Positions 5,144-60,052 of a DNA stretch of 64,000 nucleotides are shown piece after piece (within the stretch, counting starts at the first letter, position 1; each line of letters begins with the position of its first letter). The notes under the pieces were generated by a model. The model ran no database searches. It was not told where the DNA came from and saw only the letters and a program-made list of their open reading frames with translations. The DNA is from Auanema rhodensis (taxonomy: Eukaryota; Animalia; Nematoda). Both the position numbers and the translations under genes were made by a program. The DNA is taken from contig OZ059894.1 of NCBI GenBank assembly GCA_964057225.1, positions 6,820,001 to 6,884,000 of the forward strand. The letters are read 5' to 3'.

Positions 5144-5375
5144 ATATTCGTTCAAATCTGATACTTCCCTGTTGAAATAAACGGGTTTGTTAAAGATGTG
5201 TCATTGAAATGTATCTCCTCATTTTTGTTACAATCGTTTTGATAAATAATTTTTTTCGATACCGATGTGAAGGAAATTATTTTCAGTAGAAAAGTTGGAT
5301 AGAGAACTACGAATTTTTCAAACCTTGATTACCATGGGTTCTCATAAAGTTTGCTTGCGAAAAGACAGATTCGTA

Positions 5376-5449
5376 GCCGCCATAGCTCAGTCGGTTAGAG
5401 CGTGGGTCTAATAAGCCCAAGGTCGCAGGTTCGACCCCTGCTGGCGGCA
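5376..5449 (+). tRNA. tRNA-Ile(AAT)
   Basis: 74 nt GCCGCCATAGCTCAGTCGGTTAGAGCGTGGGTCTAATAAGCCCAAGGTCGCAGGTTCGACCCCTGCTGGCGGCA. Full cloverleaf, anticodon loop CTAATAA, A and B boxes, TTTT runs downstream. Confidence 0.97.
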
Positions 5450-5536
5450 AAACATTTTACTTTTAACTTCTAAATTATTCAAAACTTAATTGCCACAGGT
5501 TATAACAAAGTTTGCTTGTGAAAACACAGATTCGTA

Positions 5537-5610
5537 GCCGCCATAGCTCAGTCGGTTAGAGCGTGGGTCTAATAAGCCCAAGGTCGCAGGTTCGACCCCT
5601 GCTGGCGGCA
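5537..5610 (+). tRNA. tRNA-Ile(AAT)
   Basis: Identical 74-nt copy, 161 bp after the first. Confidence 0.97.
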
Positions 5611-5697
5611 AAACATTTTACTTTTAACTTCTAAATTATTCAAAACTTAATTGCCACAGGTTATAACAAAGTTTGCTTGTGAATACACGGATTCGTA

Positions 5698-5746
5698 GCC
5701 GCCATAGCTCAGTCGGTTAGAGCGTGGGTCTAATAAGGCCAAGGTC
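5698..5746 (+). pseudogene. Truncated tRNA-Ile(AAT), 5' two-thirds only
   Basis: Matches up to the variable loop with one C>G change, then jumps to spacer sequence. No T-arm or B box. Confidence 0.88.
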
Positions 5747-5802
5747 TTGGCTTGATTACCACGGGTTCTCATAAAGTTTGCTTGCGAAAAGGCAGATTCG
5801 TA

Positions 5803-5876
5803 GCCGCCATAGCTCAGTCGGTTAGAGCGTGGGTCTAATAAGCCCAAGGTCGCAGGTTCGACCCCTGCTGGCGGCA
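5803..5876 (+). tRNA. tRNA-Ile(AAT)
   Basis: Identical 74-nt copy. Confidence 0.97.
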
Positions 5877-5963
5877 AAACATTTTACTTTTAACTTCTAA
5901 ATTATTCAAAACTTAATTGCCACAGGTTATAACAAAGTTTGCTTGTGAAAACACAGATTCGTA

Positions 5964-6037
5964 GCCGCCATAGCTCAGTCGGTTAGAGCGTGGGTCTAAT
6001 AAGCCCAAGGTCGCAGGTTCGACCCCTGCTGGCGGCA
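5964..6037 (+). tRNA. tRNA-Ile(AAT)
   Basis: Identical 74-nt copy. Confidence 0.97.
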
Positions 6038-6124
6038 AAACATTTTACTTTTAACTTCTAAATTACTCAAAACTTAATTGCCACAGGTTATAACAAAGTT
6101 TGCTTGTGAATACACGGATTCGTA

Positions 6125-6198
6125 GCCGCCATAGCTCAGTCGGTTAGAGCGTGGGTCTAATAAGCCCAAGGTCGCAGGTTCGACCCCTGCTGGCGGCA
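6125..6198 (+). tRNA. tRNA-Ile(AAT)
   Basis: Identical 74-nt copy. Confidence 0.97.
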
Positions 6199-6285
6199 AA
6201 ACATTTTACTTTTAACTTCTAAATTACTCAAAACTTAATTGCCACAGGTTATAACAAAGTTTGCTTGTGAATACACGGATTCGTA

Positions 6286-6359
6286 GCCGCCATAGCTCAG
6301 TCGGTTAGAGCGTGGGTCTAATAAGCCCAAGGTCGCAGGTTCGACCCCTGCTGGCGGCA
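6286..6359 (+). tRNA. tRNA-Ile(AAT)
   Basis: Identical 74-nt copy. Confidence 0.97.
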
Positions 6360-6446
6360 AAACTTTTTACTTTTAACTTTTAAATTACTCAAAACTTAAT
6401 TGCCACAGGTTATAACAAAGTTTGCTTGTGAATACACGGATTCGTA

Positions 6447-6495
6447 GTCGCCATAGCTCAGTCGGTTAGAGCGTGGGTCTAATAAGGCCAAGGTC
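6447..6495 (+). pseudogene. Truncated tRNA-Ile(AAT)
   Basis: Same truncation junction as the 5698 copy, plus an extra C2T change. Confidence 0.88.
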
Positions 6496-6551
6496 TTGGC
6501 TTGATTACCACGGGTTCTCATAAAGTTTGCTTGCGAAAAGGCAGATTCGTA

Positions 6552-6625
6552 GCCGCCATAGCTCAGTCGGTTAGAGCGTGGGTCTAATAAGCCCAAGGTC
6601 GCAGGTTCGACCCCTGCTGGCGGCA
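6552..6625 (+). tRNA. tRNA-Ile(AAT)
   Basis: Identical 74-nt copy, last of cluster 1. Confidence 0.97.
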
Positions 6626-7609
6626 AAATATTTTACTTTTAACTTCTAAATTATTCAAAACTTGATTATTGAAACTTGTTCTTGCAAACAGCTAATTTTA
6701 GTATTTTTTGTTTTATTTTTCCAAACAGTTTTTTTTCACAAGATTTTTACTTTTTTACTTTAAAAATACTATCTAAAAATACCAGTTATGAAGGAAAACC
6801 ATTTCCTTATGCTCCAGCGTCTATGGTTCTCATCATATAGTGCCCACGATATTGACTATTGAATTTTCTAGAGATAACGAAGTGCATAAGGATTAAGATA
6901 GAGCTGATTAGAATTAATATTGATAAAGTTACCATGAATAGTTTCAAGAAAATGAAATATATTAACTGTTCAATATAAGTTTCATCTCTATTTGGCGTTG
7001 ATCATATATTACAAGTTTTTGAATGTTTTGTAGTTTGATCGTATGCTCTAAGCACATCTCGCTCAAAAAAGTGATGTTCACAACAGGGATTGTCGAAAAG
7101 AGAACGAGATAAGCTATTGTGTATTAATTTATTTTATCTATGTATTGCAATGAAATTTGAATTTCATGGTAATTTAAATTTTTATAATATTTGCTTGAGT
7201 AAATTTTTGAAAAGCTTTTTTCCGAGGTTTGAACTGACCTCAAAATCTTCATTTCGTAAGTTCAAGATTAAGTACAGTTGATTCAACTTTAAGCAACCAC
7301 GCATCATTCAAAAAAAAATGTCTGGACCCTGCTTCAAGAATTGAACCTTATAAGACTCATAATCTAGGATATTTGTTTTTAAAATTTCTAGTAGTTGGAT
7401 TTTTATGATTTCAATTACAAGATAAGAAAATCAAAATGTCGTAAAATTGAAAGAATACCCTTTATGTGATGAGTTTTCTTTGATATATCAAAACAATTTT
7501 GTTTTCAAAATGTGTGCTTAGAGAGCATTTCCTGCTTTTATCTCTGAAGGTGTTTTAAAAATTAGTATATATATGCGGTTGATATCAACAAACTATCTCA
7601 CAGTTTCGG

Positions 7610-8592
7610 ATGTCATACGGAAACATGTTTTTCCATGTAATCGTCTTTTCGCTTTTCAGCTTCTCCGCAGCAGAATTTGTATGTTTCTTTACATGTTCAG
7701 TAATTTTAGAAAATCGTTTGTTCTAGAAAACAGAAATGCAACCAAAAGCAATGGATATTGGACATTGTGTAAGTGAATCACAGATAAGATGTCTTTGGAA
7801 TTACAACTATCGTCTTATCATCAGGTTGCAAATGAACAAGAAAGCTTCTTATTATTTATTATACTTTGCAGAGCTTATTCCGCATTTAATGGTGGAGGGG
7901 TTGACTATAACGCTTGCAATACTTATAAGAAATCCCTCTTTGTGGACCCCGAGACTTATCCAACAATTTACATGGAACCTGCACCAGATTCATATAAAAG
8001 TGCGAGAGAACAGTTTAATGAGTTGTATCAAGCATTGAATAATCCAATGTGCGGCTTAAATAACGTGAAATTCATGTATATTCAAGTATGTTATTAGATT
8101 AAAATAGAATTTAAATCGGATCATATACGTTCAGGTTGCAAAATCACATCTACAGCGTTGGAGTTTTAATATTGAGGAAAACGTTAACTTCATTAGAGAT
8201 ATCATTCGTGCTGCTGAAGAGAAGGTCAGGAACTTCAAATTTTATCAACATCCTCATTTCATTTCTTTAGGGATTTCGCGTTGGAATCTATACTAATGAG
8301 GAAAATTGGTCAGAAATTACAGGCGATTGTGATCACAAAGATTTCAATCCAAAATATCCTATGCCATTATGGTATTTCACTTAAAACATTCATTTCTGTA
8401 CTGTACTTTCATTAATTATTTTTCAGGTATACATTTATCGCAAAAAGCGTGGAGGATATTATTAACAAGCCTGAAACTTTTGGATTTGGAGGGTGGAATG
8501 AAGAAGATATTGGCCCTTACCAGTATACCAGTTACGAAGATATTTGCCATGTACTTGGAAAAGTCAATTTTTTGAAAAAAATTGTGTATTAA
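7610..8592 (+). CDS. Secreted protist-type (GH25-like) nematode lysozyme, lys family; 6 exons
   Basis: Spliced: MSYGNMFFHVIVFSLFSFSAAEF (signal peptide)|KTEMQPKAMDIGHCVSESQIRCLWNYNYRLIIR|AYSAFNGGGVDYNAC..IYMEPAPDSYKSAREQFNELY..MYIQ|V..W..NVNFIRDIIRAAEEK|GFRVGIYTNEENWSEITG..PLW|Y..FGFGGW..QYTSYEDICHVLGKVNFLKKIVY*. The motifs RAY, YMxP, QF.E, IQV, GIYTN..W..IT, LWY and FGGW match the C. elegans LYS-1/7/8-type family. Confidence 0.87.
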
Positions 8593-8952
8593 TAACAATC
8601 GTTGATTCATTTCACATTGTGAGGTTGTGATGAGTTCAGAGATTTGCATGGTTGCAAGCCAGTTCAATTTTCATTGTACAGTAATTATATTTTTCATATT
8701 AACTTTGATTATATAAGATAAAAGTTAATATATTAACTTAACTTTTCCTTGTTTCGTGAATATCTATCAGCAATAATATATCAATCCAAATACAAATAAT
8801 TTTAGTATTTTTACTTTGGAATATCGAAAAGCTAGGACGGCCTGGATATAGATATTTTAGTAGTAGCAAAGTCGGATAGAGAGTTACGAATTGTTCAAAC
8901 CTTGATTAACACCGGTTCTAACACAGTTTTCCTGCGAAATTGCAGATCTGTA

Positions 8953-9026
8953 GCCGCCATAGCTCAGTCGGTTAGAGCGTGGGTCTAATAAGCCCAAGGT
9001 CGCAGGTTCGACCCCTGCTGGCGGCA
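8953..9026 (+). tRNA. tRNA-Ile(AAT)
   Basis: Identical 74-nt copy, cluster 2. Confidence 0.97.
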
Positions 9027-9113
9027 AAATATTTTACTTTTAACTTCTAAATTATCACAAACTTGATTATCACGCGCCCCGATAAAGTTTGTCTGCGAAA
9101 TGACAAATTCGTA

Positions 9114-9187
9114 GCCGCCATAGCTCAGTCGGTTAGAGCGTGGGTCTAATAAGCCCAAGGTCGCAGGTTCGACCCCTGCTGGCGGCA
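9114..9187 (+). tRNA. tRNA-Ile(AAT)
   Basis: Identical 74-nt copy; the satellite starts ~43 bp downstream. Confidence 0.97.
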
Positions 9188-9229
9188 AAACATTTTACTT
9201 TTAAATTCTAAACTATCCAAAACTTGATT

Positions 9230-12200
9230 GCACATTCACCGGGCACAACGTGACTACAGCCTGAACTTTTTTGCGGTAAAATTTTGATGGGACTTTTACT
9301 TTTTCCGGAAAAGGAGCAACGGAAAATGAATACCCAACGTCAAACCATTTTTATTTGATTATAGTTGATGATCTTTTAGAAAAAGGCACATTCACCGGGA
9401 CAACGTGTCTACAGCCTGAACTTTTTTGTGAACAAATCTCTTAGATGTGCTCGCATAAACCCCTTTTCCGGAAAAAGTAAAAGTCCCAAGAAAATTTTAC
9501 CAAGAAATTCAGAATCTACACATCTGAATACCCTACCTCAAACTATTTTTATTTGATTATAGTTGATGATCTTTTAGAAAAAGGCACATTCACCGGGGAC
9601 AACGTGACTACAGCCTGAACTTTTTTGTGAACAAATCTCTTACATGTGCTCGCATAAGCTCCTTTTCCGGAAAAAGTAAAAGTCCCATGAAAATTTTACT
9701 GAGAAGTTCAGAATCTACACATCTGAATACCCAACGTCAAACCATTTTTATTTGATTATAGTTGATGATCTTTTAGAAAAAGGCACATTCACCGGGGACA
9801 ACGTGACTACAGCCTGAACTTTTTTGTGAACAAATCTCTTGAACGGGCTCGGCATAAACCCCTTTTCCGGAAAAAGTAAAAGTCCCATGAAACTTTTACC
9901 AAGAAATTCAGAATCTACACATCTGAATACCCTACCTCAAACTATTTTTATTTGATTATAGTTGATGATCTTTTAGAAAAAGGCACATTCACCGGGGACA
10001 ACGTGACTACAGCCTGAACTTTTTTGTGAACAAATCTCTTACATGTGCTCGCATAAACCCCTTTTCCGGAAAAAGTAAAAGTCCCATGAAAATTTTACTG
10101 AGAATTTCAGAATCTACACATCTGAATACCCAACGTCAAACCATTTTTATTTGATTATAGTTGATGATCTTTTAGAAAAAGGCACATTCACCGGGGACAA
10201 CGTGACTACAGCCTGAACTTTTTTGTGAACAAATCTCTTACATGTGCTCGCATAAGCTCCTTTTCCGGAAAAAGTAAAAGTCCCATGAAAATTTTACCAA
10301 GAAATTCAGAATCTACACATCTGAATACCCAACCTCAAACTATTTTTATTTGATTATAGTTGATGATCTTTTAGAAAAAGGCACATTCACCAGGCACAAC
10401 GTGACTACAGCCTGAACTTTTTTGTGAACAAATCTCTTACATGTGCTCGCATAAGCTCCTTTTCCGGAAAAAGTAAAAGTCCCATGAAAATTTTACCAAG
10501 AAATTCAGAATCTACACATCTGAATACCCTACCTCAAACTATTTTTATTTGATTATAGTTGATCATCTTTTAGAAAAAGGCACATTCACCGGGGACAACG
10601 TGACTACAGCCTGAACTTTTTTGTGAACAAATCTCTTACATGTGCTCGCATAAACCCCTTTTCCGGAAAAAGTAAAAGTCCCATGAAAATTTTACTGAGA
10701 ATTTCAGAATCTACACATCTGAATACCCAACGTCAAACCATTTTTATTTGATTATAGTTGATGATCTTTTAGAAAAAGGCACATTCACCGGGGACAACGT
10801 GACTACAGCCTGAACTTTTTTGTGAACAAATCTCTTACATGTGCTCGCATAAGCTCCTTTTCCGGAAAAAGTAAAAGTCCCATGAAAATTTTACCAAGAA
10901 ATTCAGAATCTACACATCTGAATACCCTACCTCAAACTATTTTTATTTGATTATAGTTGATGATCTTTTAGAAAAAGGCACATTCACCAGGCACAACGTG
11001 ACTACAGCCTGAACTTTTTTGTGAACAAATCTCTTACATGTGCTCGCATAAGCTCCTTTTCCGGAAAAAGTAAAAGTCCCATGAAAATTTTACCAAGAAA
11101 TTCAGAATCTACACATCTGAATACCCAACCTCAAACTATTTTTATTTGATTATAGTTGATGATCTTTTAGAAAAAGGCACATTCACCAGGCACAACGTGA
11201 CTACAGCCTGAACTTTTTTGTGAACAAATCTCTTACATGTGCTCGCATAAGCTCCTTTTCCGGAAAAAGTAAAAGTCCCATGAAAATTTTACCAAGAAAT
11301 TCAGAATCTACACATCTGAATACCCTACCTCAAACTATTTTTATTTGATTATAGTTGATCATCTTTTAGAAAAAGGCACATTCACCGGGGACAACGTGAC
11401 TACAGCCTGAACTTTTTTGTGAACAAATCTCTTACATGTGCTCGCATAAACCCCTTTTCCGGAAAAAGTAAAAGTCCCATGAAAATTTTACTGAGAATTT
11501 CAGAATCTACACATCTGAATACCCAACGTCAAACCATTTTTATTTGATTATAGTTGATGATCTTTTAGAAAAAGGCACATTCACCGGGGACAACGTGACT
11601 ACAGCCTGAACTTTTTTGTGAACAAATCTCTTACATGTGCTCGCATAAGCTCCTTTTCCGGAAAAAGTAAAAGTCCCATGAAAATTTTACCAAGAAATTC
11701 AGAATCTACACATCTGAATACCCTACCTCAAACTATTTTTATTTGATTATAGTTGATGATCTTTTAGAAAAAGGCACATTCACCGGGGACAACGTGACTA
11801 CAGCCTGAACTTTTTTGTGAACAAATCTCTTACATGTGCTCGCATAAGCTCCTTTTCCGGAAAAAGTAAAAGTCCCATGAAAATTTTACCAAGAAATTCA
11901 GAATCTACACATCTGAATACCCTACCTCAAACTATTTTTATTTGATTATAGTTGATGATCTTTTAGAAAAAGGCACATTCACCGGGGACAACGTGACTAC
12001 AGCCTGAACTTTTTTGTGAACAAATCTCTTACATGTGCTCGCATAAGCTCCTTTTCCGGAAAAAGTAAAAGTCCCATGAAAATTTTACCAAGAAATTCAG
12101 AATCTACACATCTGAATACCCAACGTCAAACCATTTTTATTTGATTATAGTTGATGATCTTTTAGAAAAAGGCACATTCACCGGGGACAACGTGACTACA

Positions 12201-15200
12201 GCCTGAACTTTTCTTGAACAAATCTCTTACATGTGCTCGCATAAGCTCCTTTTCCGGAAAAAGTAAAAGTCCCATGAAAATTTTACCAAGAAATTCAGAA
12301 TCTACACATCTGAATACCCTACCTCAAACTATTTTTATTTGATTATAGTTGATCATCTTTTAGAAAAAGGCACATTCACCGGGGACAACGTGACTACAGC
12401 CTGAACTTTTTTGTGAACAAATCTCTTGAACGGGCTCGGCATAAACCCCTTTTCCGGAAAAAGTAAAAGTCCCATGAAACTTTTACCAAGAAATTCAGAA
12501 TCTACACATCTGAATACCCTACCTCAAACTATTTTTATTTGATTATAGTTGATGATCTTTTAGAAAAAGGCACATTCACCGGGGACAACGTGACTACAGC
12601 CTGAACTTTTTTGTGAACAAATCTCTTACATGTGCTCGCATAAACCCCTTTTCCGGAAAAAGTAAAAGTCCCATGAAAATTTTACTGAGAATTTCAGAAT
12701 CTACACATCTGAATACCCAACGTCAAACCATTTTTATTTGATTATAGTTGATGATCTTTTAGAAAAAGGCACATTCACCGGGGACAACGTGACTACAGCC
12801 TGAACTTTTTTGTGAACAAATCTCTTAGATGTGCTCGCATAAACCCCTTTTCCGGAAAAAGTAAAAGTCCCATGAAACTTTTACCAAGAAATTCAGAATC
12901 TACACATCTGAATACCCAACGTCAAACCATTTTTATTTGATTATAGTTGATGATCTTTTAGAAAAAGGCACATTCACCGGGGACAACGTGACTACAGCCT
13001 GAACTTTTTTGTGAACAAATCTCTTGAACGGGCTCGGCATAAACCCCTTTTCCGGAAAAAGTAAAAGTCCCATGAAACTTTTACCAAGAAATTCAGAATC
13101 TACACATCTGAATACCCTACCTCAAACTATTTTTATTTGATTATAGTTGATGATCTTTTAGAAAAAGGCACATTCACCGGGGACAACGTGACTACAGCCT
13201 GAACTTTTTTGTGAACAAATCTCTTACATGTGCTCGCATAAACCCCTTTTCCGGAAAAAGTAAAAGTCCCATGAAAATTTTACTGAGAATTTCAGAATCT
13301 ACACATCTGAATACCCAACGTCAAACCATTTTTATTTGATTATAGTTGATGATCTTTTAGAAAAAGGCACATTCACCGGGGACAACGTGACTACAGCCTG
13401 AACTTTTTTGTGAACAAATCTCTTACATGTGCTCGCATAAGCTCCTTTTCCGGAAAAAGTAAAAGTCCCATGAAAATTTTACCAAGAAATTCAGAATCTA
13501 CACATCTGAATACCCTACCTCAAACTATTTTTATTTGATTATAGTTGATGATCTTTTAGAAAAAGGCACATTCACCAGGCACAACGTGACTACAGCCTGA
13601 ACTTTTTTGTGAACAAATCTCTTACATGTGCTCGCATAAGCTCCTTTTCCGGAAAAAGTAAAAGTCCCATGAAAATTTTACTGAGAATTTCAGAATCTAC
13701 ACATCTGAATACCCAACGTCAAACCATTTTTATTTGATTATAGTTGATGATCTTTTAGAAAAAGGCACATTCACCGGGGACAACGTGACTACAGCCTGAA
13801 CTTTTTTGTGAACAAATCTCTTACATGTGCTCGCATAAGCTCCTTTTCCGGAAAAAGTAAAAGTCCCATGAAAATTTTACCAAGAAATTCAGAATCTACA
13901 CATCTGAATACCCTACCTCAAACTATTTTTATTTGATTATAGTTGATCATCTTTTAGAAAAAGGCACATTCACCGGGCACAACGTGACTACAGCCTGAAC
14001 TTTTTTGCGGTAAAATTTTGATGGGACTTTTACTTTTTCCGGAAAAGGAGCAACGGAAAATGAATACCCAACGTCAAACCATTTTTATTTGATTATAGTT
14101 GATGATCTTTTAGAAAAAGGCACATTCACCGGGGACAACGTGACTACAGCCTGAACTTTTTTGTGAACAAATCTCTTACATGTGCTCGCATAAGCTCCTT
14201 TTCCGGAAAAAGTAAAAGTCCCATGAAAATTTTACTGAGAATTTCAGAATCTACACATCTGAATACCCAACCTCAAACTACTTTTGTTTGATTATAGTTG
14301 ATGATCTTTTAGAAAAAGGCACATTCACCGGGGACAACGTGACTACAGCCTGAACTTTTTTGTGAACAAATCTCTTAGATGTGCTCGCATAAACCCCTTT
14401 TCCGGAAAAAGTAAAAGTCCCATGAAAATTTTACCAAGAAATTCAGAATCTACACATCTGAATACCCTACCTCAAACTATTTTTATTTGATTATAGTTGA
14501 TGATCTTTTAGAAAAAGGCACATTCACCAGGCACAACGTGACTACAGCCTGAACTTTTTTGTGAACAAATCTCTTACATGTGCTCGCATAAGCTCCTTTT
14601 CCGGAAAAAGTAAAAGTCCCATCAAAATTTTACCAAGAAATTCAGAATCTACACATCTGAATACCCAACCTCAAACTATTTTTATTTGATTATAGTTGAT
14701 GATCTTTTAGAAAAAGGCACATTCACCGGGGACAACGTGACTACAGCCTGAACTTTTTTGTGAACAAATCTCTTAGATGTGCTCGCATAAACCCCTTTTC
14801 CGGAAAAAGTAAAAGTCCCATGAAAATTTTACCAAGAAATTCAGAATCTACACATCTGAATACCCTACCTCAAACTATTTTTGGGGCTGGTATCGTTTCG
14901 CCCACCCCCCCCCCTAAGAGTTAACATTAGAGCGCATGCGTTTTTTACCTGAAAATAAAGAGTCTCATCTCTGTGAGTGGGAGTGCTCTCTCTGATACTT
15001 TTAATACTTTTAAATTTTGTTGAAGCTCTCTCTATCTGGGGGGGATACCCCCCCAGACCCCCCAGATTTGGGATAGAGCACTCCCGCTGGTTTATGCAAA
15101 GCTAGTGCGTGCCCAAAATGTTATCTTAGATCATGCGTTATTTACTCGAAAATACAGTCTCATTTCTGCGAGTTTAATACATTTAAATTTTGTTGAAGCT

Positions 15201-49500: not shown

Positions 49501-52500
49501 GTTGATCATCTTTTAGAAAAAGGCACATTCACCGGGCACAACGTGACTACAGCCTGAACTTTTTTGTGAACAAATCTCTTAGATGTGCTCGCATAAACCC
49601 CTTTTCCGGAAAAAGTAAAAGTCCCATGAAACTTTTACCAAGAAATTCAGAATCTACACATCTGAATACCCAACCTCAAACTATTTTTATTTGATTATAG
49701 TCGATGATGTTTTAGAAAAAGGCACATTCACCGGGCACAACGTGACTACAGCCTGAACTTTTTTGTGAACAAATCTCTTAGATGTGCTCGCATAAACCCC
49801 TTTTCCGGAAAAAGTAAAAGTCCCATGAAAATTTTACCAAGAAATTCAGAATCTACACATCTGAATACCAAACCTCAAACTATTTTTATTTGATTATAGT
49901 CGATGATGTTTTAGAAAAAGGCACATTCACCGGGCACAACGTGAGTATAGCCTGAACTTTTTTGTGAACAAATCTCTTAGATGTGCTCGCATAAACCCCT
50001 TTTCCGGAAAAAGTAAAAGTCCCATGAAACTTTTACCAAGAAATTCAGAATCTACACATCTGAATACCCAACCTCAAACTATTTTTATTTGATTATAGTC
50101 GATGATGTTTTAGAAAAAGGCACATTCACCGGGCACAACGTGACTACAGCCTGAACTTTTTTGTGAACAAATCTCTTAGATGTGCTCGCATAAACCCCTT
50201 TTCCGGAAAAAGTAAAAGTCCCATGAAAATTTTACCAAGAAATTCAGAATCTATACATCTGAATACCCAACCTCAAACTATTTTTATTTGATTATAGTTG
50301 ATCATCTTTTAGAAAAAGGCACATTCACCGGGCACAACGTGAGTATAGCCTGAACTTTTTTGTGAACAAATCTCTTACATGTGCTCGCATAAACCCCTTT
50401 CCCGGAAAAAGTAAAAGTCCCATCAAAATTTTACCGAGAAATTCAGAATCTATACATCTGAATACCCAACCTCAAACTATTTTTATTTGATTATAGTTGA
50501 TCATCTTTTAGAAAAAGGCACATTCACCGGGCACAACGTGAGTATAGCCTGAACTTTTTTGTGAACAAATCTCTTACATGTGCTCGCATAAACCCCTTTC
50601 CCGGAAAAAGTAAAAGTCCCATCAAAATTTTACCGAGAAATTCAGAATCTATACATCTGAATACCCAACCTCAAACTATTTTTATTTGATTATAGTTGAT
50701 CATCTTTTAGAAAAAGGCACATTCACCGGGCACAACGTGAGTATAGCCTGAACTTTTTTGTGAACAAATCTCTTAGATGTGCTCGCATAAACCCCTTTTC
50801 CGGAAAAAGTAAAAGTCCCATGAAACTTTTACCAAGAAATTCAGAATCTACACATCTGAATACCCAACCTCAAACTCTTTTTATTTGATTATAGTCGATG
50901 ATGTTTTAGAAAAAGGCACATTCACCGGGCACAACGTGAGTATAGCCTGAACTTTTTTGTGAACAAATCTCTTACATGTGCTCGCATAAACCCCTTTCCC
51001 GGAAAAAGTAAAAGTCCCATCAAAATTTTACCGAGAAATTCAGAATCTATACATCTGAATACCCAACCTCAAACTATTTTTATTTGATTATAGTTGATCA
51101 TCTTTTAGAAAAAGGCACATTCACCGGGCACAACGTGAGTATAGCCTGAACTTTTTTGTGAACAAATCTCTTACATGTGCTCGCATAAGCTCCTTTTCCG
51201 GAAAAAGTAAAAGTCCCATGAAAATTTTACCAAGAAATTCAGAATCTACACATCTGAATACCAAACCTCAAACTATTTTTATTTGATTATAGTTGATGAT
51301 CTTTTAGAAAAAGGCACATTCACCGGGCACAACGTGACTATAGCCTGAACTTTTTTGTGAACAAATCTCTTACATGTGCTCGCATAAGCTCCTTTTCCGG
51401 AAAAAGTAAAAGTCCCATCAAAATTTTACCGAGAAATTCAGAATCTACACATCTGAATACCAAACCTCAAACTATTTTTATTTGATTATAGTCGATGATG
51501 ATTTAGAAAAAGGCACATTCACCGGGCACAACGTGACTACAGCCTGAACTTTTTTGTGAACAAATCTCTTACATGTGCTCGCATAAGCTCCTTTTCCGGA
51601 AAAAGTAAAAGTCCCATCAAAATTTTACCGAGAAATTCAGAATCTACACATCTGAATACCAAACCTCAAACTATTTTTATTTGATTATAGTTGATCATCT
51701 TTTAGAAAAAGGCACATTCACCGGGCACAACGTGACTACAGCCTGAACTTTTTTGTGAACAAATCTCTTACATGTGCTCGCATAAGCTCCTTTTCCGGAA
51801 AAAGTAAAAGTCCCATCAAAATTTTACCGAGAAATTCAGAATCTACACATCTGAATACCCAAGCTCAAACTATTTTTATTTGATTATAGTCGATGATGTT
51901 TTAGAAAAAGGCACATTCACCGGGCACAACGTGACTACAGCCTGAACTTTTTTGTGAACAAATCTCTTAGATGTGCTCGCATAAGCTCCTTTTCCGGAAA
52001 AAGTAAAAGTTCCATCAAACTTTTACCAAGAAATTCAGAGTCTACACATCTGAATACCCAAGCTCAAACTATTTTTATTTGATTATAGTTGATCATCTTT
52101 TAGAAAAAGGCACATTCACCGGGCACAACGTGACTACAGCCTGAACTTTTTTGTGAACAAATCTCTTAGATGTGCTCGCATAAGCTCCTTTTCCGGAAAA
52201 AGTAAAAGTCCCATCAAAATTTTACCGAGAAATTCGGAATCTACACATCTGAATACCCAAGCTCAAACTATTTTTATTTGATTATAGTTGATCATCTTTT
52301 AGAAAAAGGCACATTCACCGGGCACAACGTGACTACAGCCTGAACTTTTTTGTGAACAAATCTCTTAGATGTGCTCGCATAAGCTCCTTTTCCGGAAAAA
52401 GTAAAAGTTCCATCAAACTTTTACCAAGAAATTCAGAGTCTACACATCTGAATACCCAACCTCAAACTCTTTTTATTTGATTATAGTCGATGATGTTTTA

Positions 52501-55500
52501 GAAAAAGGCACATTCACCGGGCACAACGTGAGTATAGCCTGAACTTTTTTGTGAACAAATCTCTTACATGTGCTCGCATAAGCTCCTTTTCCGGAAAAAG
52601 TAAAAGTCCCATCAAAATTTTACCAAGAAATTCAGAATCTACACATCTGAATACCCAACCTCAAACTATTTTTATTTGATTATAGTTGATCATCTTTTAG
52701 AAAAAGGCACATTCACCGGGCACAACGTGACTACAGCCTGAACTTTTTTGTGAACAAATCTCTTACATGTGCTCGCATAAGCTCCTTTTCCGGAAAAAGT
52801 AAAAGTCCCATCAAAATTTTACCGAGAAATTCAGAATCTACACATCTGAATACCCAACCTCAAACTATTTTTATTTGATTATAGTTGATGATCTTTTAGA
52901 AAAAGGCACATTCACCGGGCACAACGTGACTACAGCCTGAACTTTTTTGTGAACAAATCTCTTACATGTGCTCGCATAAGCTCCTTTCCCGGAAAAAGTA
53001 AAAGTCCCATCAAAATTTTACCGAAAAATCCAGAATCTACACATCTGAATACCCAACCTCAAACTATTTTAATTTGATTATAGTTGATCATCTTTTAGAA
53101 AAAGGCACATTCACCGGGCACAACGTGACTACAGCCTGAACTTTTTTGTGAACAAATCTCTTACATGTGCTCGCATAAACCCCTTTCCCGGAAAAAGTAA
53201 AAGTCCCATCAAAATTTTACCGAGAAATTCAGAATCTATACATCTGAATACCCAACCTCAAACTATTTTAATTTGATTATAGTTGATCATCTTTTAGAAA
53301 AAGGCACATTCACCGGGCACAACGTGACTACAGCCTGAACTTTTTTGTGAACAAATCTCTTAGATGTGCTCGCATAAACCCCTTTTCCGGAAAAAGTAAA
53401 AGTCCCATGAAACTTTTACCAAGAAATTCAGAATCTACACATCTGAATACCCAACCTCAAACTATTTTTATTTGATTATAGTCGATGATGTTTTAGAAAA
53501 AGGCACATTCACCGGGCACAACGTGAGTATAGCCTGAACTTTTTTGTGAACAAATCTCTTAGATGTGCTCGCATAAACCCCTTTTCCGGAAAAAATAAAA
53601 GTCCCATCAAAATTTTACCGAGAAATTCAGAATCTACACATCTGAATACCCAACCTCAAACTATTTTTATTTGATTATAGTCGATGATGTTTTAGAAAAA
53701 GGCACATTCACCGGGCACAACGTGAGTATAGCCTGAACTTTTTTGTGAACAAATCTCTTAGATGTGCTCGCATAAACCCCTTTTCCGGAAAAAGTAAAAG
53801 TCCCATCAAAATTTTACCAAGAAATTCAGAATCTACACATCTGAATACCAAACCTCAAACTATTTTTATTTGATTATAGTTGATCATCTTTTAGAAAAAG
53901 GCACATTCACCGGGCACAACGTGAGTATAGCCTGAACTTTTTTGTGAACAAATCTCTTAGATGTGCTCGCATAAACCCCTTTTCCGGAAAAAGTAAAAGT
54001 CCCATGAAACTTTTACTAAGAAATTCAGAATCTACACATCTGAATACCCAACCTCAAACTCTTTTTATTTGATTATAGTCGATGATGTTTTAGAAAAAGG
54101 CACATTCACCGGGCACAACGTGACTACAGCCTGAACTTTTTTGTGAACAAATCTCTTAGATGTGCTCGCATAAACCCCTTTTCCGGAAAAAGTAAAAGTC
54201 CCATGAAAATTTTACCAAGAAATTCAGAATCTACACATCTGAATACCAAACCTCAAACTATTTTTATTTGATTATAGTTGATGATCTTTTAGAAAAAGGC
54301 ACATTCACCGGGCACAACGTGACTATAGCCTGAACTTTTTTGTGAACAAATCTCTTACATGTGCTCGCATAAGCTCCTTTTCCGGAAAAAGTAAAAGTCC
54401 CATGAAAATTTTACCAAGAAATTCAGAATCTACACATCTGAATACCAAACCTCAAACTATTTTTATTTGATTATAGTTGATGATCTTTTAGAAAAAGGCA
54501 CATTCACCGGGCACAACGTGACTACAGCCTGAACTTTTTTGTGAACAAATCTCTTACATGTGCTCGCATAAGCTCCTTTTCCGGAAAAAGTAAAAGTCCC
54601 ATCAAACTTTTACCAAGAAATTCAGAATCTACACATCTGAATACCCAACCTCAAACTATTTTAATTTGATTATAGTTGATGATCTTTTAGAAAAAGGCAC
54701 ATTCACCGGGCACAACGTGACTACAGCCTGAACTTTTTTGTGAACAAATCTCTTACATGTGCTCGCATAAGCTCCTTTTCCGGAAAAAGTAAAAGTCCCA
54801 TCAAACTTTTACCAAGAAATTCAGAATCTACACATCTGAATACCCAACCTCAAACTATTTTAATTTGATTATAGTTGATGATCTTTTAGAAAAAGGCACA
54901 TTCACCGGGCACAACGTGACTACAGCCTGAACTTTTTTGTGAACAAATCTCTTACATGTGCTCGCATAAGCTCCTTTTCCGGAAAAAGTAAAAGTCCCAT
55001 CAAACTTTTACCAAGAAATTCAGAATCTACACATCTGAATACCCAACCTCAAACTATTTTTATTTGATTATAGTTGATCATCTTTTAGAAAAAGGCACAT
55101 TCACCGGGCACAACGTGAGTATAGCCTGAACTTTTTTGTGAACAAATCTCTTAGATGTGCTCGCATAAACCCCTTTTCCGGAAAACGTAAAAGTCCCATG
55201 AAAATTTTACCAAGAAATTCAGAATCTACACATCTGAATACCAAACCTCAAACTATTTTTATTTGATTATAGTTGATGATCTTTTAGAAAAAGGCACATT
55301 CACCGGGCACAACGTGAGTATAGCCTGAACTTTTTTGTGAACAAATCTCTTACATGTGCTCGCATAAGCTCCTTTTCCGGAAAAAGTAAAAGTCCCATCA
55401 AAATTTTACCGAGAAATTCAGAATCTACACATTTGAATACCCAACCTCAAACTATTTTTATTTGATTATAGTTGATGATCTTTTAGAAAAAGGCACATTC

Positions 55501-56723
55501 ACCGGGCACAACGTGACTACAGCCTGAACTTTTTTGTGAACAAATCTCTTAGATGTGCTCGCATAAACCCCTTTTCCGGAAAAAGTAAAAGTCCCATCAA
55601 ACTTTTACCAAGAAATTCAGAATCTACACATCTGAATACCCAACCTCAAACTATTTTTATTTGATTATAGTTGATCATCTTTTAGAAAAAGGCACATTCA
55701 CCGGGCACAACGTGACTACAGCCTGAACTTTTTTGTGAACAAATCTCTTACATGTGCTCGCATAAGCTCCTTTTCCGGAAAAAGTAAAAGTCCCATCAAA
55801 CTTTTACCAAGAAATTCAGAATCTACACATCTGAATACCCAACCTCAAACTATTTTTATTTGATTATAGTTGATCATCTTTTAGAAAAAGGCACATTCAC
55901 CGGGCACAAAGTGACTACAGCCTGAACTTTTTTGTGAACAAATCTCTTACATGTGCTCGCATAAGCTCCTTTTCCGGAAAAAGTAAAAGTCCCATCAAAA
56001 TTTTACCAAGAAATTCAGAATCTACACATCTGAATACCCAACCTCAAACTATTTTTATTTGATTATAGTTGATGATCTTTTAGAAAAAGGCACATTCACC
56101 GGGCACAACGTGACTACAGCCTGAACTTTTTTGTGAACAAATCTCTTACATGTGCTCGCATAAGCTCCTTTTCCGGAAAAAGTAAAAGTCCCATCAAACT
56201 TTTACCAAGAAATTCAGAATCTACACATCTGAATACCCAACCTCAAACTATTTTAATTTGATTATAGTTGATGATCTTTTAGAAAAAGGCACATTCACCG
56301 GGCACAACGTGACTACAGCCTGAACTTTTTTGTGAACAAATCTCTTACATGTGCTCGCATAAGCTCCTTTTCCGGAAAAAGTAAAAGTCCCATCAAACTT
56401 TTACCAAGAAATTCAGAATCTACACATCTGAATACCCAACCTCAAACTATTTTAATTTGATTATAGTTGATGATCTTTTAGAAAAAGGCACATTCACCGG
56501 GCACAACGTGACTACAGCCTGAACTTTTTTGTGAACAAATCTCTTACATGTGCTCGCATAAGCTCCTTTTCCGGAAAAAGTAAAAGTCCCATCAAACTTT
56601 TACCAAGAAATTCAGAATCTACACATCTGAATACCCAACCTCAAACTATTTTAATTTGATTATAGTTGATGATCTTTTAGAAAAAGGCACATTCACCGGG
56701 CACAACGTGACTACAGCCTGAAC
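37541..56723. repeat. 199-bp satellite, right array (~96 units), same orientation as the left array
   Basis: Same monomer with its own diagnostic variants (GAGTATAG, GTCGATGATGTT, TTTCCCGG). Ends at ...CAGCCTGAAC. Confidence 0.98.
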
Positions 56724-57166
56724 CCCCGCATTTACAACGACAAGACTATTCGTTGGACCAACATCTTGCTTGACTAAGTTACCGGGGTTGTAAGCTGCAT
56801 TCGAATTGACGGGACTTTGAAAAGATTTATGTGACATTTTCCGCCCGAAATCACGCGATTATCTTTTCTGGAGAATTTACAAATTGACCAATGACAATGT
56901 TCAAAGTATTTCCTTCAGGTGTGTTTAGGCTTTAACAGCTTTGGATTTTCCAGAAGAATCAAGACTAAACTGAAGAGAACGAGTTCCACCTTCAATTCGA
57001 TTCTTCTTTAAAGTGATCGTACGAGGAGGTTTATATTCTAGTACCAAGTTTTGTATATTCTTATGGGAAACATGGCGGCTACGAATCTGCCATTTCGCTT
57101 TCAAACTTTGTTATAACCTGTGGCAATCAAGTTTTGAATAATTTAGAAGTTAAAAGTAAAATGTTT

Positions 57167-57240
57167 TGCCGCCAGCAGGGGTCGAACCTGCGACCTTGGG
57201 CTTATTAGACCCACGCTCTAACCGACTGAGCTATGGCGGC
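57167..57240 (-). tRNA. tRNA-Ile(AAT)
   Basis: Exact reverse complement of the 74-nt gene. Confidence 0.97.
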
Positions 57241-57327
57241 TACGAATCTGCCATTTTGCTATCAAACTTTGTTATAATCTGTGGCAATCATGTTTTGAAT
57301 AATTTAGAAGTTAAAAGTAAAATATTT

Positions 57328-57401
57328 TGCCGCCAGCAGGGGTCGAACCTGCGACCTTGGGCTTATTAGACCCACGCTCTAACCGACTGAGCTATGGCGG
57401 C
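57328..57401 (-). tRNA. tRNA-Ile(AAT)
   Basis: Exact reverse complement; 161-bp period. Confidence 0.97.
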
Positions 57402-57489
57402 CACGAATCTGCCATTTCGCTATCAAACTTTGTTATAAACCTGTGGCAATCATGTTTTGAATAATTTAGAAGTTAAAAGTAAAATGTTT

Positions 57490-57563
57490 TGCCGCCAGCA
57501 GGGGTCGAACCTGCGACCTTGGGCTTATTAGACCCACGCTCTAACCGACTGAGCTATGGCGGC
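57490..57563 (-). tRNA. tRNA-Ile(AAT)
   Basis: Exact reverse complement. Confidence 0.97.
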
Positions 57564-57650
57564 TACGAATCTGCCATTTCGCTCTCGAACTTTGTTATAA
57601 CCTGTGGCAATCAAGTTTTGAATAATTTAGAAGTTAAAAGTAAAATGTTT

Positions 57651-57724
57651 TGCCGCCAGCAGGGGTCGAACCTGCGACCTTGGGCTTATTAGACCCACGC
57701 TCTAACCGACTGAGCTATGGCGGC
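57651..57724 (-). tRNA. tRNA-Ile(AAT)
   Basis: Exact reverse complement. Confidence 0.97.
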
Positions 57725-58191
57725 TACGAATCTGCCATTTCGCTTTCAAACTTTGTTATAACCTGTGGCAATCAAGTTTTGAATAATTTAGAAGTTAAAA
57801 GTTGTTGTTCGCCGTGGTATCCTGACTCGTAGGAGAGCGTAACACAGGCATGATGGTTCAGTGCTATACTTTTGGTGTTGAGTAGAAGACCGAGTAGTGG
57901 TAAAGATTTATTAAGCTGAAGATAGTGCAGAGAATAGATAAAATGATTGACACATAAATTTGAAGATTCTTCTCGGTTTATATAGTAACCCGAGAAGCTA
58001 GATATAATGATTATTTTAGAGATTTTAGAGAAGAAAAGAGGGAGGAGTTTCAAGCTTTATCTCATACTACATCTGCTGAGATTTTGCGTTGGAGGGATGA
58101 ATCGCGCATGAGTCATGAGGATAAAACCCTTACGATAAACTTACACGTTTATCGATCGAAAGAGAAAGAGTGAGAAAAAGATTATAACGAG

Positions 58192-58557
58192 CGTTCCATT
58201 ATGCTCCTACGTATATTGAACAGACCATTGTAGTCTGCTCAACTACGCGTATAGTATTCCATAAGTGTAGCGGTATGGAAATAGAGCATAAGGATTACAT
58301 AAGATAAGGAAATATATAGGTTTATTATACACAATACAATATCATTACAATACATTAACACAAGGATAAAGTAAACTACATTTACAAGACAAAGACTAAT
58401 ATATAAGATTAACTAAGTTAGATGCAAACCGTCCATGGGCTTGCAAAGGGGCGAACTCCCGAATAGGGGCATGAGGGAAGGCGGTGCCATTCCTCATTCC
58501 TCTAGTCGGTCTGGCTCTAACCCTGCAGTTACATATATAGAGTCTCCGAATGGAACG
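58192..58557. mobile_element. 366-bp insertion nested in the 3' LTR; probable solo LTR
   Basis: Absent from the sister LTR. Termini CGTTCCATT...AATGGAACG; 4-bp TSD CGAG at 58188-58191 and 58558-58561. TATA-like and AATAAA signals on the - strand. Confidence 0.78.
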
Positions 58558-58607
58558 CGAGTTCTTATTAAAAATAACGAGTGCGTAAGCACACTCCGGC
58601 CGACGAG

Positions 58608-59459
58608 TTAGAATATGTCCTGATATTTGATAGTTTTATCCATACTGGGTGCTGTGCATGGTTGTTTAGTTGGCGGTTGGTCGGTGTTCGTTATTTTTGG
58701 TGGTGATCTGTTTGTGTCCGTCATTCTTGCTCTTGATTTTCTTGGTGGTGTTTGAGTTTCTTTCCAATTGGTCGGTTGATTGGTTTTTGGGACCATTTGC
58801 TTCAACAGATCCTTGATTTGTCGGAGTTCATCCAACATTTCCTTGCCTTTGTCCTCATTGGTTAACTTCATCATAATACGAGTTAAGGTAGTTAGATCTT
58901 CGCCGATGTTACGGGTTATGAGATCTATCTTCTTCAATTCGGGCATAGCTTCCACGACGATTATGTTGCTCTTGGTGGTGGGAGCTTGATCCTTTTCCTT
59001 TTGGACCTTTGTGAGTACGTAAGGCATGTTCTTGAGCTCGATAGAGCTTAGATAATCCTTTTGAATGTTGCAGATGAGGTTCGTGAGAGATTTTATTCGT
59101 CCTCTGAGCGTCCTTTCGTTAGTGGCTAGGCGTTCTTTATCCTCAGCCGTCAAGTTGTCCGTAATGTTATTCATTTCCTCGATCAGATTCTGGATTGCTT
59201 GGGTGTCCTCATCGATGGAGCTGATTTCCGTTTGCCGAGTTTCAATCATGGCCGGAGCCCGGTGAGAATGATAGTTGATCGTTCTGTGGACGCATGATCT
59301 TCTTTTGGAGTCCGATTCGCGGATTTTGTCCAGTAGGTGATTGCATTTTTCCATCCACGCTTCGGCGCGGTCTGTTGCAGTAGGCTCGGCCTGATTTGGC
59401 CGATGCACCATGTTGTTAGCCGTGGTATCCTGACTCGTAGGAGAGCGTAACACAGGCAT
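58608..59459 (-). CDS. 283-aa helical/coiled-coil protein of the mini-LTR element (possibly Gag-derived or accessory)
   Basis: Stop-free ORF filling the whole internal region and ending 14 bp before the 3' LTR. Heptad-like L/I/E/K pattern and a P/T-rich C-terminus. No recognisable motif. Confidence 0.65.
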   Translation of the reverse strand: MPVLRSPTSQDTTANNMVHRPNQAEPTATDRAEAWMEKCNHLLDKIRESDSKRRSCVHRTINYHSHRAPAMIETRQTEISSIDEDTQAIQNLIEEMNNITDNLTAEDKERLATNERTLRGRIKSLTNLICNIQKDYLSSIELKNMPYVLTKVQKEKDQAPTTKSNIIVVEAMPELKKIDLITRNIGEDLTTLTRIMMKLTNEDKGKEMLDELRQIKDLLKQMVPKTNQPTNWKETQTPPRKSRARMTDTNRSPPKITNTDQPPTKQPCTAPSMDKTIKYQDIF

Positions 59460-59845
59460 GATGGTTCAGTGCTATACTTTTGGTGTTGAGTAGAAGACCG
59501 AGTAGTGGTAAAGATTTATTAAGCTGAAGATAGTGCAGAGAATAGATAAAATGATTGACACATAAATTTGAAGATTCCTCTCGGTTTATATAGTAACCCG
59601 AGAAGCTAGATATAATGATTATTTTAGAGATTTTAGAGAAGAAAAGAGGGAGGAGTTTCAAGCTTTATCTCATACTACATCTGCTGAGATTTTGCGTTGG
59701 AGGGATGAATCGCGCATGAGTCATGAGGAAAAAACCCTTACGATAAACTTACACGTTTATCGATCGAAAGAGAAAGAGTGAGAAAAAGATTATAACGAGT
59801 TCTTATTAAAAATAACGAGTGCGTAAGCACAAAAGTAAAATGTTT

Positions 59846-59919
59846 TGCCGCCAGCAGGGGTCGAACCTGCGACCTTGGGCTTATTAGACCCACGCTCTAA
59901 CCGACTGAGCTATGGCGGC
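59846..59919 (-). tRNA. tRNA-Ile(AAT)
   Basis: Exact reverse complement of the 74-nt gene. Confidence 0.97.
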
Positions 59920-60006
59920 CACGAATCTGGCATTTCGCTATCAAACTTTGTTATAACCTGTGGCAATCAAGTTTTGAATAATTTAGAAGTTAAAAGAAAA
60001 ATGTTT

Positions 60007-60052
60007 TGCCGCCAGCAGGGGTCGAACCTGCGACCTTGGGCTTATTAGACCC
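60007..60052 (-). pseudogene. 3' part of tRNA-Ile(AAT), disrupted in the anticodon stem by the Gypsy LTR
   Basis: The tRNA match stops at ...TTATTAGACCC and LTR sequence follows. Confidence 0.88.

Follow-up and report, generated by a model that had tools for sequence, protein, structure and literature searches.

A compound repeat island of tRNA-Ile(AAT) arrays and satellite DNA in Auanema rhodensis and its probable origin by rearrangement

A 64,000-nt stretch of the genome of the nematode Auanema rhodensis (A. rhodense below; contig OZ059894.1, C1:6,820,001-6,884,000), hereafter the window, carries tandem arrays of tRNA-Ile(AAT) genes on both sides of a long satellite block. Positions beyond 64000 continue the same numbering and are called window-equivalent. 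The whole repeat island is about 66.5 kb long, is autosomal, and is bordered by an aos-1-like gene to the left and by a tyrosine-kinase-like gene to the right. The original prediction, made from the sequence, had proposed that the arrays form a boundary of RNA polymerase III (Pol III) and TFIIIC that protects the neighbouring genes from satellite heterochromatin. On balance, the locus is probably a rearranged compound repeat island, with no purpose-built chromatin fence. The arrays on the two sides belong to one local family, the right array bears scars of an inversion inside its tRNA units, and the 10 edges inspected in five related satellite blocks were free of tRNA genes. Three independent components would have come together here, namely a tRNA-Ile family, a block of a dispersed satellite, and young transposon insertions.

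The tRNA-Ile(AAT) sub-arrays and the inverted junction

The window holds 14 tRNA-Ile(AAT) genes according to ARAGORN. Those on the + strand number nine (5376-9187) and those on the - strand five (57167-59919), and both sets are transcribed toward the satellite. Each of them scored 71.8 bits against the tRNA family RF00005, for which the gathering score is 29, and the Rfam scan of the 64-kb window revealed no RNA family besides tRNA. A head-to-tail unit of 161 bp was found by TRF on both sides of the satellite, with 94%-97% matches. The central observation of the original prediction, that the same 161-bp unit occurs on both sides and points inward, was thus confirmed by ARAGORN, Rfam, and TRF. 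The simple two-array picture needed refinement: the left side consists of two sub-arrays, A and B, with a gene between them, the satellite is interrupted by a miniature inverted-repeat transposable element (MITE) and a 1.75-kb foreign piece, and a 320-bp gene fragment precedes the right array, R. The predicted end of array R at 60052 proved to be wrong, since the array continues to window-equivalent 71779 and is split by three long terminal repeat (LTR) elements. The arrays and the elements inserted into them are as follows.

5279-6667, + strand: array A, with a leader of ~97 nt, seven intact tRNAs, and two truncated ones, ending at spacer position +42
5376, 5537, 5803, 5964, 6125, 6286, and 6552, + strand: starts of the intact tRNAs of array A (ARAGORN, Rfam, sequence)
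5698-5746 and 6449-6495, + strand: tRNAs of array A truncated at nt 49 (sequence)
8853-9230, + strand: array B, with a leader and two intact tRNAs (starting at 8953 and 9114), adjoining the satellite 43 nt past the last tRNA
57073-57802, - strand: inner part of array R, with the innermost tRNA cut to nt 1-8 (57073-57080)
57167, 57328, 57490, and 57651, - strand: intact tRNAs in the inner part of array R (ARAGORN, Rfam)
57803-59831, - strand: LTR element of 2 kb, with 389-bp LTRs that are 99.2% identical, an open reading frame (ORF) for a 283-aa non-pol product, and the target-site duplication AAAGT in the tRNA spacer
59832-60052, - strand: continuation of array R, holding a complete tRNA (59846-59919) and, at 60007-60052, the 3' portion of a tRNA that the following element interrupts
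60053-67204 (window-equivalent), - strand: Ty3/gypsy LTR retrotransposon, with 381-bp LTRs that are 99.7% identical
67274-71469 (window-equivalent): third LTR element, with 100% identical LTRs and a target-site duplication

The intact and truncated units of array A form a higher-order repeat, and the leaders of array A (5279-5375) and array B (8853-8952) are about 79% identical. The discrete segment made up of the leader, a tRNA, and 42 nt of spacer looks like the unit first copied around the locus. Past the window, array R contains two further intact tRNAs, which brings the number of intact genes at the locus to 16. With the LTR elements removed, array R becomes a contiguous array of about 8.3 units.

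All 16 intact tRNAs are identical over their 74 nt (1,184 nt in total, zero substitutions). The A box TAGCTCAGTCGG occupies tRNA nt 8-19 and the B box GGTTCGACCCC nt 53-63, while TTTT runs matching T-run terminators lie 6-16 nt downstream of every copy. Having a cloverleaf with a defined anticodon, A and B boxes with oligo-T, and head-to-tail repetition, the locus has the properties of a tandem tRNA gene array. The combination of invariant tRNAs with a spacer divergence of 10%-27% points to selection on the tRNA sequence or to conversion from other functional copies. Judging from these features, the genes are very probably active, working Pol III genes.

The two arrays facing the satellite have a common origin. 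A search of the 181-Mb genome, with all seven candidates scored, located the 87-bp spacer of the tRNA unit nowhere but at this locus, where it occurs to the left and to the right of the satellite. Because the spacer is restricted to the locus, the arrays represent one local family and their pairing is not due to chance. Spacer identity is 94%-100% within array A, 91%-95% within array R, 83%-90% between arrays A and R, and 73%-77% between array B and either of the other two. Apart from the tRNA units, no inverted homology was found between the two flanks. Another tRNA-Ile(AAT) array is located at C7:10,794,605-10,850,158; it has a 666-bp unit, extends for about 55 kb, and lies on one strand throughout. 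Its tRNA is identical to that of the locus and its spacer is unrelated; the two arrays have nothing in common beyond the tRNA and 6 nt upstream of it, and kinship between them was therefore rejected.

A junction past the outer end of array R (window-equivalent 72041-72121) suggests how the two directions could have arisen. At this point a tRNA fragment on the - strand, covering tRNA nt 39 to 13 (21/24 matches), is fused head to head with a tRNA remnant on the + strand, and the letters at the fusion, CGAC, constitute a microhomology. The + remnant comprises tRNA nt 58-74 with 42 nt of spacer and shares 91.5% identity with the end of array A. Both the remnant and array A stop at the same spacer phase (+42) beside unrelated flanks, and array B ends 1-6 nt beyond this phase. 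The remnant therefore seems to be the natural 3' terminus of a distal array that once lay on the + strand and has since had its body turned the other way. At its inner end, array R is cut at tRNA nt 8. Inverted homologous segments, truncated end units, and a head-to-head junction with microhomology are together what a break-repair inversion leaves behind, and from the sequence these features can be read as traces left when a segment was inverted, or was copied through an inverted template switch, with the breaks falling inside tRNA units.

In the simplest history, arrays A and B and the distal array would all have been in the same direction at first. The locus-specific tRNA-Ile family may have been amplified by unequal exchange and segmental duplication, giving rise to these three arrays. 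The distal array, about 1.5 kb long before the transposons arrived, would then have been flipped, or copied in inverted orientation, by break repair or template switching with breakpoints inside tRNA units, and the LTR elements would have landed in it after the flip. The convergent orientation would then result from the flipping or inverted copying of a distal sub-array, and no symmetric device would have been built. The layout itself is asymmetric and scarred, with truncated units, a gene fragment at one junction, and three transposable elements on one side.

These elements are three different young LTR insertions within about 1.3 kb of tRNA array, located in a 3' spacer, inside a tRNA, and in a 5' spacer, respectively; none was found in the equally long left array. 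The Ty3/gypsy element is the one inside a tRNA, where the target-site duplication GACCC corresponds to tRNA nt 28-32, and it showed Pfam matches to RVT_1, RNase H, and integrase.

The satellite block, its sister blocks, and an SH3-gene module

The satellite block occupies 9231-56723 (47.5 kb) and consists of about 237 copies of a 199-bp monomer, also detected as a 398-bp dimer. TRF placed it at 9327-56723, and reading of the sequence moved its start to 9231, that is, 43 bp past the last left tRNA, in agreement with the predicted size and position. All monomers are in the + orientation, except for an inverted segment of about 45 bp in one variant monomer. The core of the block at 19.5-40 kb is homogenised (97%-99% in the part at 19.5-35.8 kb) and the edges are more varied, on the left at 9.5-19 kb, which is the usual signature of unequal exchange. 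The following features make up the block and its right border.

9231-35792, + strand: left satellite sub-block of the 199-bp monomer
9261-9317 and 13995-14051: variant monomer with an internal inversion of ~45 bp (sequence)
14883-15364, no strand assigned: MITE-like insertion of 482 bp, with terminal inverted repeats and a target-site duplication of the TATTTTT type
35793-37540, - strand: gene-module fragment of 1.75 kb inside the satellite, replacing 73 bp of one monomer
37541-56723, + strand: right satellite sub-block of the 199-bp monomer
56733-57052, - strand: gene-module fragment of 320 bp with two partial exons, in the gap between the satellite and array R

The MITE is present elsewhere in the genome in at least 10 full-length copies at 97%-99% identity.

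With a 19-nt monomer core as the query, about 5,035 matches to the satellite were found genome-wide. Sister blocks are located at C1:6.350-6.3715, C1:14.61, C3:5.85, C3:14.73, C5:7.30, C5:16.23-16.25, C5:16.273, and C7:16.50 Mb, and these blocks on C1, C3, C5, and C7 are 70%-89% identical to the block in the window. The satellite is thus a dispersed one, forming a long head-to-tail array with local homogenisation and occurring at several loci. Kinship of the 199-bp satellite with the megabase terminal and central repeats of C1 was rejected, as there were no matches.

The sister blocks offered a test of the predicted boundary. If the tRNA genes were barriers, they should recur at satellite edges, and such recurrence was not seen: in five sister blocks out of perhaps dozens, with both edges inspected and 1.1-12 kb of flank at each, tRNA genes were present at 0 of 10 edges. 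Two of 18 random samples from gene-rich C1 DNA fell inside unrelated tRNA arrays, which makes an adjoining tRNA array unremarkable in this genome. One of these samples (C1:7,200,001-7,204,000) contained a tRNA-Cys(GCA) array with 14 genes in 2.7 kb, and the other (C1:7,500,001-7,504,000) a tRNA-Pro(TGG) array with 8 genes in 3 kb, which illustrates the high density of tRNA arrays in this gene-rich segment. From the edges sampled, tRNA arrays are no regular feature of the borders of this satellite family, and the proposed protection of wdr-20 and aos-1 by a Pol III/TFIIIC boundary gained no support from the sister blocks.

On the other hand, inversions seem to recur at this satellite family. 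The orientation of the monomers switches (-, +, -) in the sister blocks at C1:6.350-6.3715 and C5:16.273 Mb. At the block at C5:7.30 Mb (7.296-7.306 Mb), 303 bp from the left junction (290 bp of flank and the first 13 bp of the satellite) recur in inverted form, at 98% identity, 2.7 kb past the right edge.

The satellite is also tangled with a gene module. The 1.75-kb piece at 35793-37540 comprises a Glu/Pro-rich coding-like repeat of 15 nt and a region of about 1 kb located downstream of an SH3-domain gene, and is 89% identical to sequences at C7:14.895 Mb and C6:14.956 Mb. The 320-bp piece at 56733-57052 is 91% and 86% identical to C7:14,894,485-14,894,888. The two pieces are collinear parts of one module on the same strand, so the idea that the 320-bp piece is random filler captured during repair was rejected. 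This SH3-gene module has at least 38 copies in the genome. Its fuller copies (C7:14,893,244-14,896,388 and C6:14,953,844-14,956,915) code for a protein that is Q-rich and has an SH3 domain at its C-terminus; the Glu/Pro-rich repeat of 15 nt comes after it, and the domain was confirmed in an intact paralogue. Where the module would have the 462 bp with its Q-rich and SH3 exons, the window has the right satellite sub-block of 19 kb. The module also adjoins the sister blocks at C1:14.6165 and C5:16.2749 Mb, with differing junctions. The satellite may have arisen from the SH3-gene module or may preferentially grow beside it; at this locus, the block of ~200-bp repeats would have grown via unequal exchange and become entangled with a pseudogenised copy of the module. 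A solitary monomer-like sequence, 71% identical, is present in the module copy on C6.

Competing explanations and known systems

In the explanation originally proposed, inward-facing arrays recruit TFIIIC and Pol III, confine satellite heterochromatin, and shield the flanking genes. The anatomy gives it some plausibility: the tRNAs are intact and identical, with A and B boxes and T-run terminators, so that binding of TFIIIC is plausible, and the distance from the arrays to the nearest ordinary genes is 233 bp on the left and about 1.2 kb on the right. Barriers made of tRNA genes (tDNAs) and TFIIIC are well established in yeasts, examples being the imr tRNA genes of Schizosaccharomyces pombe centromeres and the tRNA-Thr gene at HMR of Saccharomyces cerevisiae. 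At all S. pombe centromeres, tDNAs recur at the edges of the repeat domain. The locus resembles these systems in layout only: a repeat block is edged by Pol III genes that contain A and B boxes and are inverted between the two sides, and expressed genes lie just beyond. It differs in that the association is not repeated at the sister blocks inspected, the inverted repeat is limited to the tRNA units, and the orientation is traceable to a scar. In C. elegans, extra-TFIIIC sites form clusters and TFIIIC sites cluster beside H3K9me3 domains (PMC6950938), which also speaks for a boundary. However, such a device should have left tRNA genes at the sister edges, where none of the 10 inspected had any, tRNA arrays are common in gene-rich DNA, the protein-coding gene between A and B separates most left tRNAs from the satellite, the orientation is accounted for by the inversion scar, and the right array is riddled with transposable elements. 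A dedicated boundary is accordingly improbable. In its broadest form, with the inward tRNA-Ile arrays as paired Pol III/TFIIIC barriers around a satellite retained in the soma and acting on chromatin, on the loading of SMC (structural maintenance of chromosomes) complexes, or on head-on replication forks, we would give it little chance. If true, the tRNA-bounded centromere domain of fission yeast would have a counterpart here in a holocentric animal, and the rearrangement would have been kept for insulating aos-1 and the kinase gene.

A closer rival is a single large inversion, in which a + array stood beside the satellite and an inversion of 50-60 kb with one breakpoint in the array moved half of the array together with the satellite. 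It would account for one locus-specific unit being shared by both arrays and for the inverted junctions lying inside tRNA sequence, and inversions do recur around this satellite family. Nevertheless, the left array ends at about spacer +43, a few nucleotides from the natural end seen at two other places, with no matching broken unit, and the + remnant with a natural end is located outside the - array, which is better explained by a flip of the distal array alone. A large inversion also predicts a satellite remnant at the outer right junction; none was found there, the best local alignment scoring 22-23 against a mean of 22.6 for shuffled controls. We regard this inversion as unlikely, a judgement that covers jointly the variant suggested in the original prediction, in which the satellite expanded at the breakpoint. 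The proposal that an inversion occurred within one ancestral tRNA array holds in substance, given the locus-unique spacer and the head-to-head fusion, while expansion of the satellite at the breakpoint is not favoured. The last possibility is that a mis-join or a collapse in the assembly produced the inverted array or the apparent length of the satellite. About 20 kb of the satellite is 97%-99% homogeneous, which is near the length of a HiFi read, and the copy number there could be wrong. On the contrary, every junction is unique sequence, the arrays carry array-specific spacer variants, the transposable elements have clean target-site duplications, and the assembly was made from HiFi and Hi-C data with a contig N50 of 16.4 Mb (bioRxiv 10.64898/2026.08.27.747507). 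An artefact is therefore very hard to credit.

Several points weigh against a rearranged repeat island without a boundary role. Array B is the most divergent sub-array in spite of its place between A and R; to account for this, it must have been duplicated earlier, or A and R must have exchanged sequence by gene conversion. After a simple two-break inversion in place, the inner junction should hold a tRNA stub in + orientation; none was seen there, so deletions or a replicative template switch must be invoked. The reciprocal junction is not cleanly preserved, which leaves room for other paths of rearrangement, among them the inversion of 50-60 kb. The sister edges sampled come from a minority of the blocks. 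There is also a slim chance that active tRNA genes additionally limit the spread of heterochromatin as a by-product. Finally, the segment with the window appears to be kept in the soma, as suggested by coarse sampling of C1 and the text of the preprint. On C1, a tandem repeat with a period of 351/176 was found at 0.5-5.5 Mb, non-repeat DNA at 5.6-11.5 Mb, a different repeat at 13 Mb, non-repeat DNA at 15 and 18 Mb, and the terminal repeat again at 22 Mb. The megabase repeat boundary is at 5.50-5.60 Mb, which places the window (6.82 Mb) 1.2-1.3 Mb inside the first gene-rich segment. The published assembly of A. rhodense has 180.9 Mb, seven chromosomes, and 19,554 tRNA genes, and the soma loses about 61% of the germline genome (bioRxiv 10.64898/2026.08.27.747507); the sequence used here comprised 180,911,798 bp in 112 contigs.

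All parts of the island are of known kinds, namely tandem tRNA arrays, a satellite block, LTR insertions, and a microhomology inversion junction, and by itself the locus reveals no new kind of element. The tRNA tandem repeats of A. rhodense have been mentioned in outline (bioRxiv 10.64898/2026.08.27.747507), and the arrays described here are like them in having head-to-tail units with a single isoacceptor, an invariant tRNA, and drifting spacers; the likeness to tandem tRNA arrays of other eukaryotes, with one intact tRNA per unit, is the same. They differ in size, with 16 intact genes in 161-bp units versus hundreds of genes elsewhere in the genome, and in arrangement, since an unrelated satellite lies among the three sub-arrays, of which one is inverted. 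The scars resemble those of inversions and inverted duplications that arise at repeat arrays via microhomology and are attributed to nonhomologous end joining (NHEJ) or to fork stalling and template switching/microhomology-mediated break-induced replication (FoSTeS/MMBIR) in the head-to-head junction via 3-5 nt (CGAC) that joins opposed copies of one repeat, the truncated units at both ends of the inverted segment, and the inverted junction copies at sister satellite blocks. In our case the mechanism is deduced from sequence scars, and the expected reciprocal junction is not intact.

If our reading is right, the island offers a well-preserved view of repeat-island formation amid extreme tRNA amplification and a heavy satellite load. 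It displays tRNAs held invariant versus drifting spacers, an inversion breakpoint inside a tRNA, retrotransposons in the array, and a satellite family found repeatedly at inverted junctions and beside one gene module. Its main value would be as a clean natural record of array dynamics. It could also serve for convenient and cheap tests of whether tDNAs insulate in a nematode whose soma loses most satellites and apparently keeps this one.

Flanking genes and candidate break sites

The protein-coding genes at the left border and between arrays A and B are listed below.

2958-3080, + strand: C-terminal exon of a WDR20 (wdr-20) orthologue, matching residues 526-564 of human WDR20 in PDB (phmmer, E = 5.5e-18)
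3683-5143, + strand: 3' exons of an SAE1/aos-1-like gene, whose stop codon (5141-5143) precedes the first tRNA by 233 bp
~6700-8600, + strand: multi-exon protein-coding gene between arrays A and B (ORFs)

The wdr-20 exon was identified as predicted. The assignment of its neighbour to SAE1/aos-1 is tentative: the ThiF match in Pfam had E = 1.3e-4, below the cutoff, and the last exon matched the C-terminus of SAE1 with E = 0.01. Housekeeping genes had been placed about 230 bp outside the arrays, which holds on the left and fails on the right, where the tyrosine-kinase-like gene begins about 1.2 kb past the outer end of array R. The gene between arrays A and B may resemble nematode GH25 lysozymes; a Pfam scan of two of its exons gave no match.

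The soma of A. rhodense is formed by programmed DNA elimination (PDE), with four break sites per autosome at transitions between gene-rich DNA and megabase tandem repeats (bioRxiv 10.64898/2026.08.27.747507). The locus shares an abrupt gene-to-satellite transition with the sequence-for-elimination (SFE) break sites of A. rhodense and Oscheius tipulae; it differs from them in having no SFE-like palindrome and in lying 1.2-1.3 Mb from the megabase boundary. No SFE-like 29-bp palindrome was present in the window in scans for 29-bp palindromes and GGC-N(1-3)-GCC cores, which relied on palindrome geometry and the GGC/GCC core in place of the exact A. rhodense motif. By these properties, the window does not look like a PDE break site. 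A palindrome at the published SFE position "chromosome 5: 16,502,174" was not found on C5, C1, C3, C4, C6, or C7, the numbering or coordinates evidently being different. The only candidate in the window, a GGC-N3-GCC near-palindrome at 58470-58498, was rejected as an SFE, since it is an LTR motif with 242 genomic copies. These copies are mostly paired 3.2 or 11.7 kb apart, and all of the listed ones are in gene-rich DNA; the motif is a possible false positive in scans for break-site motifs.

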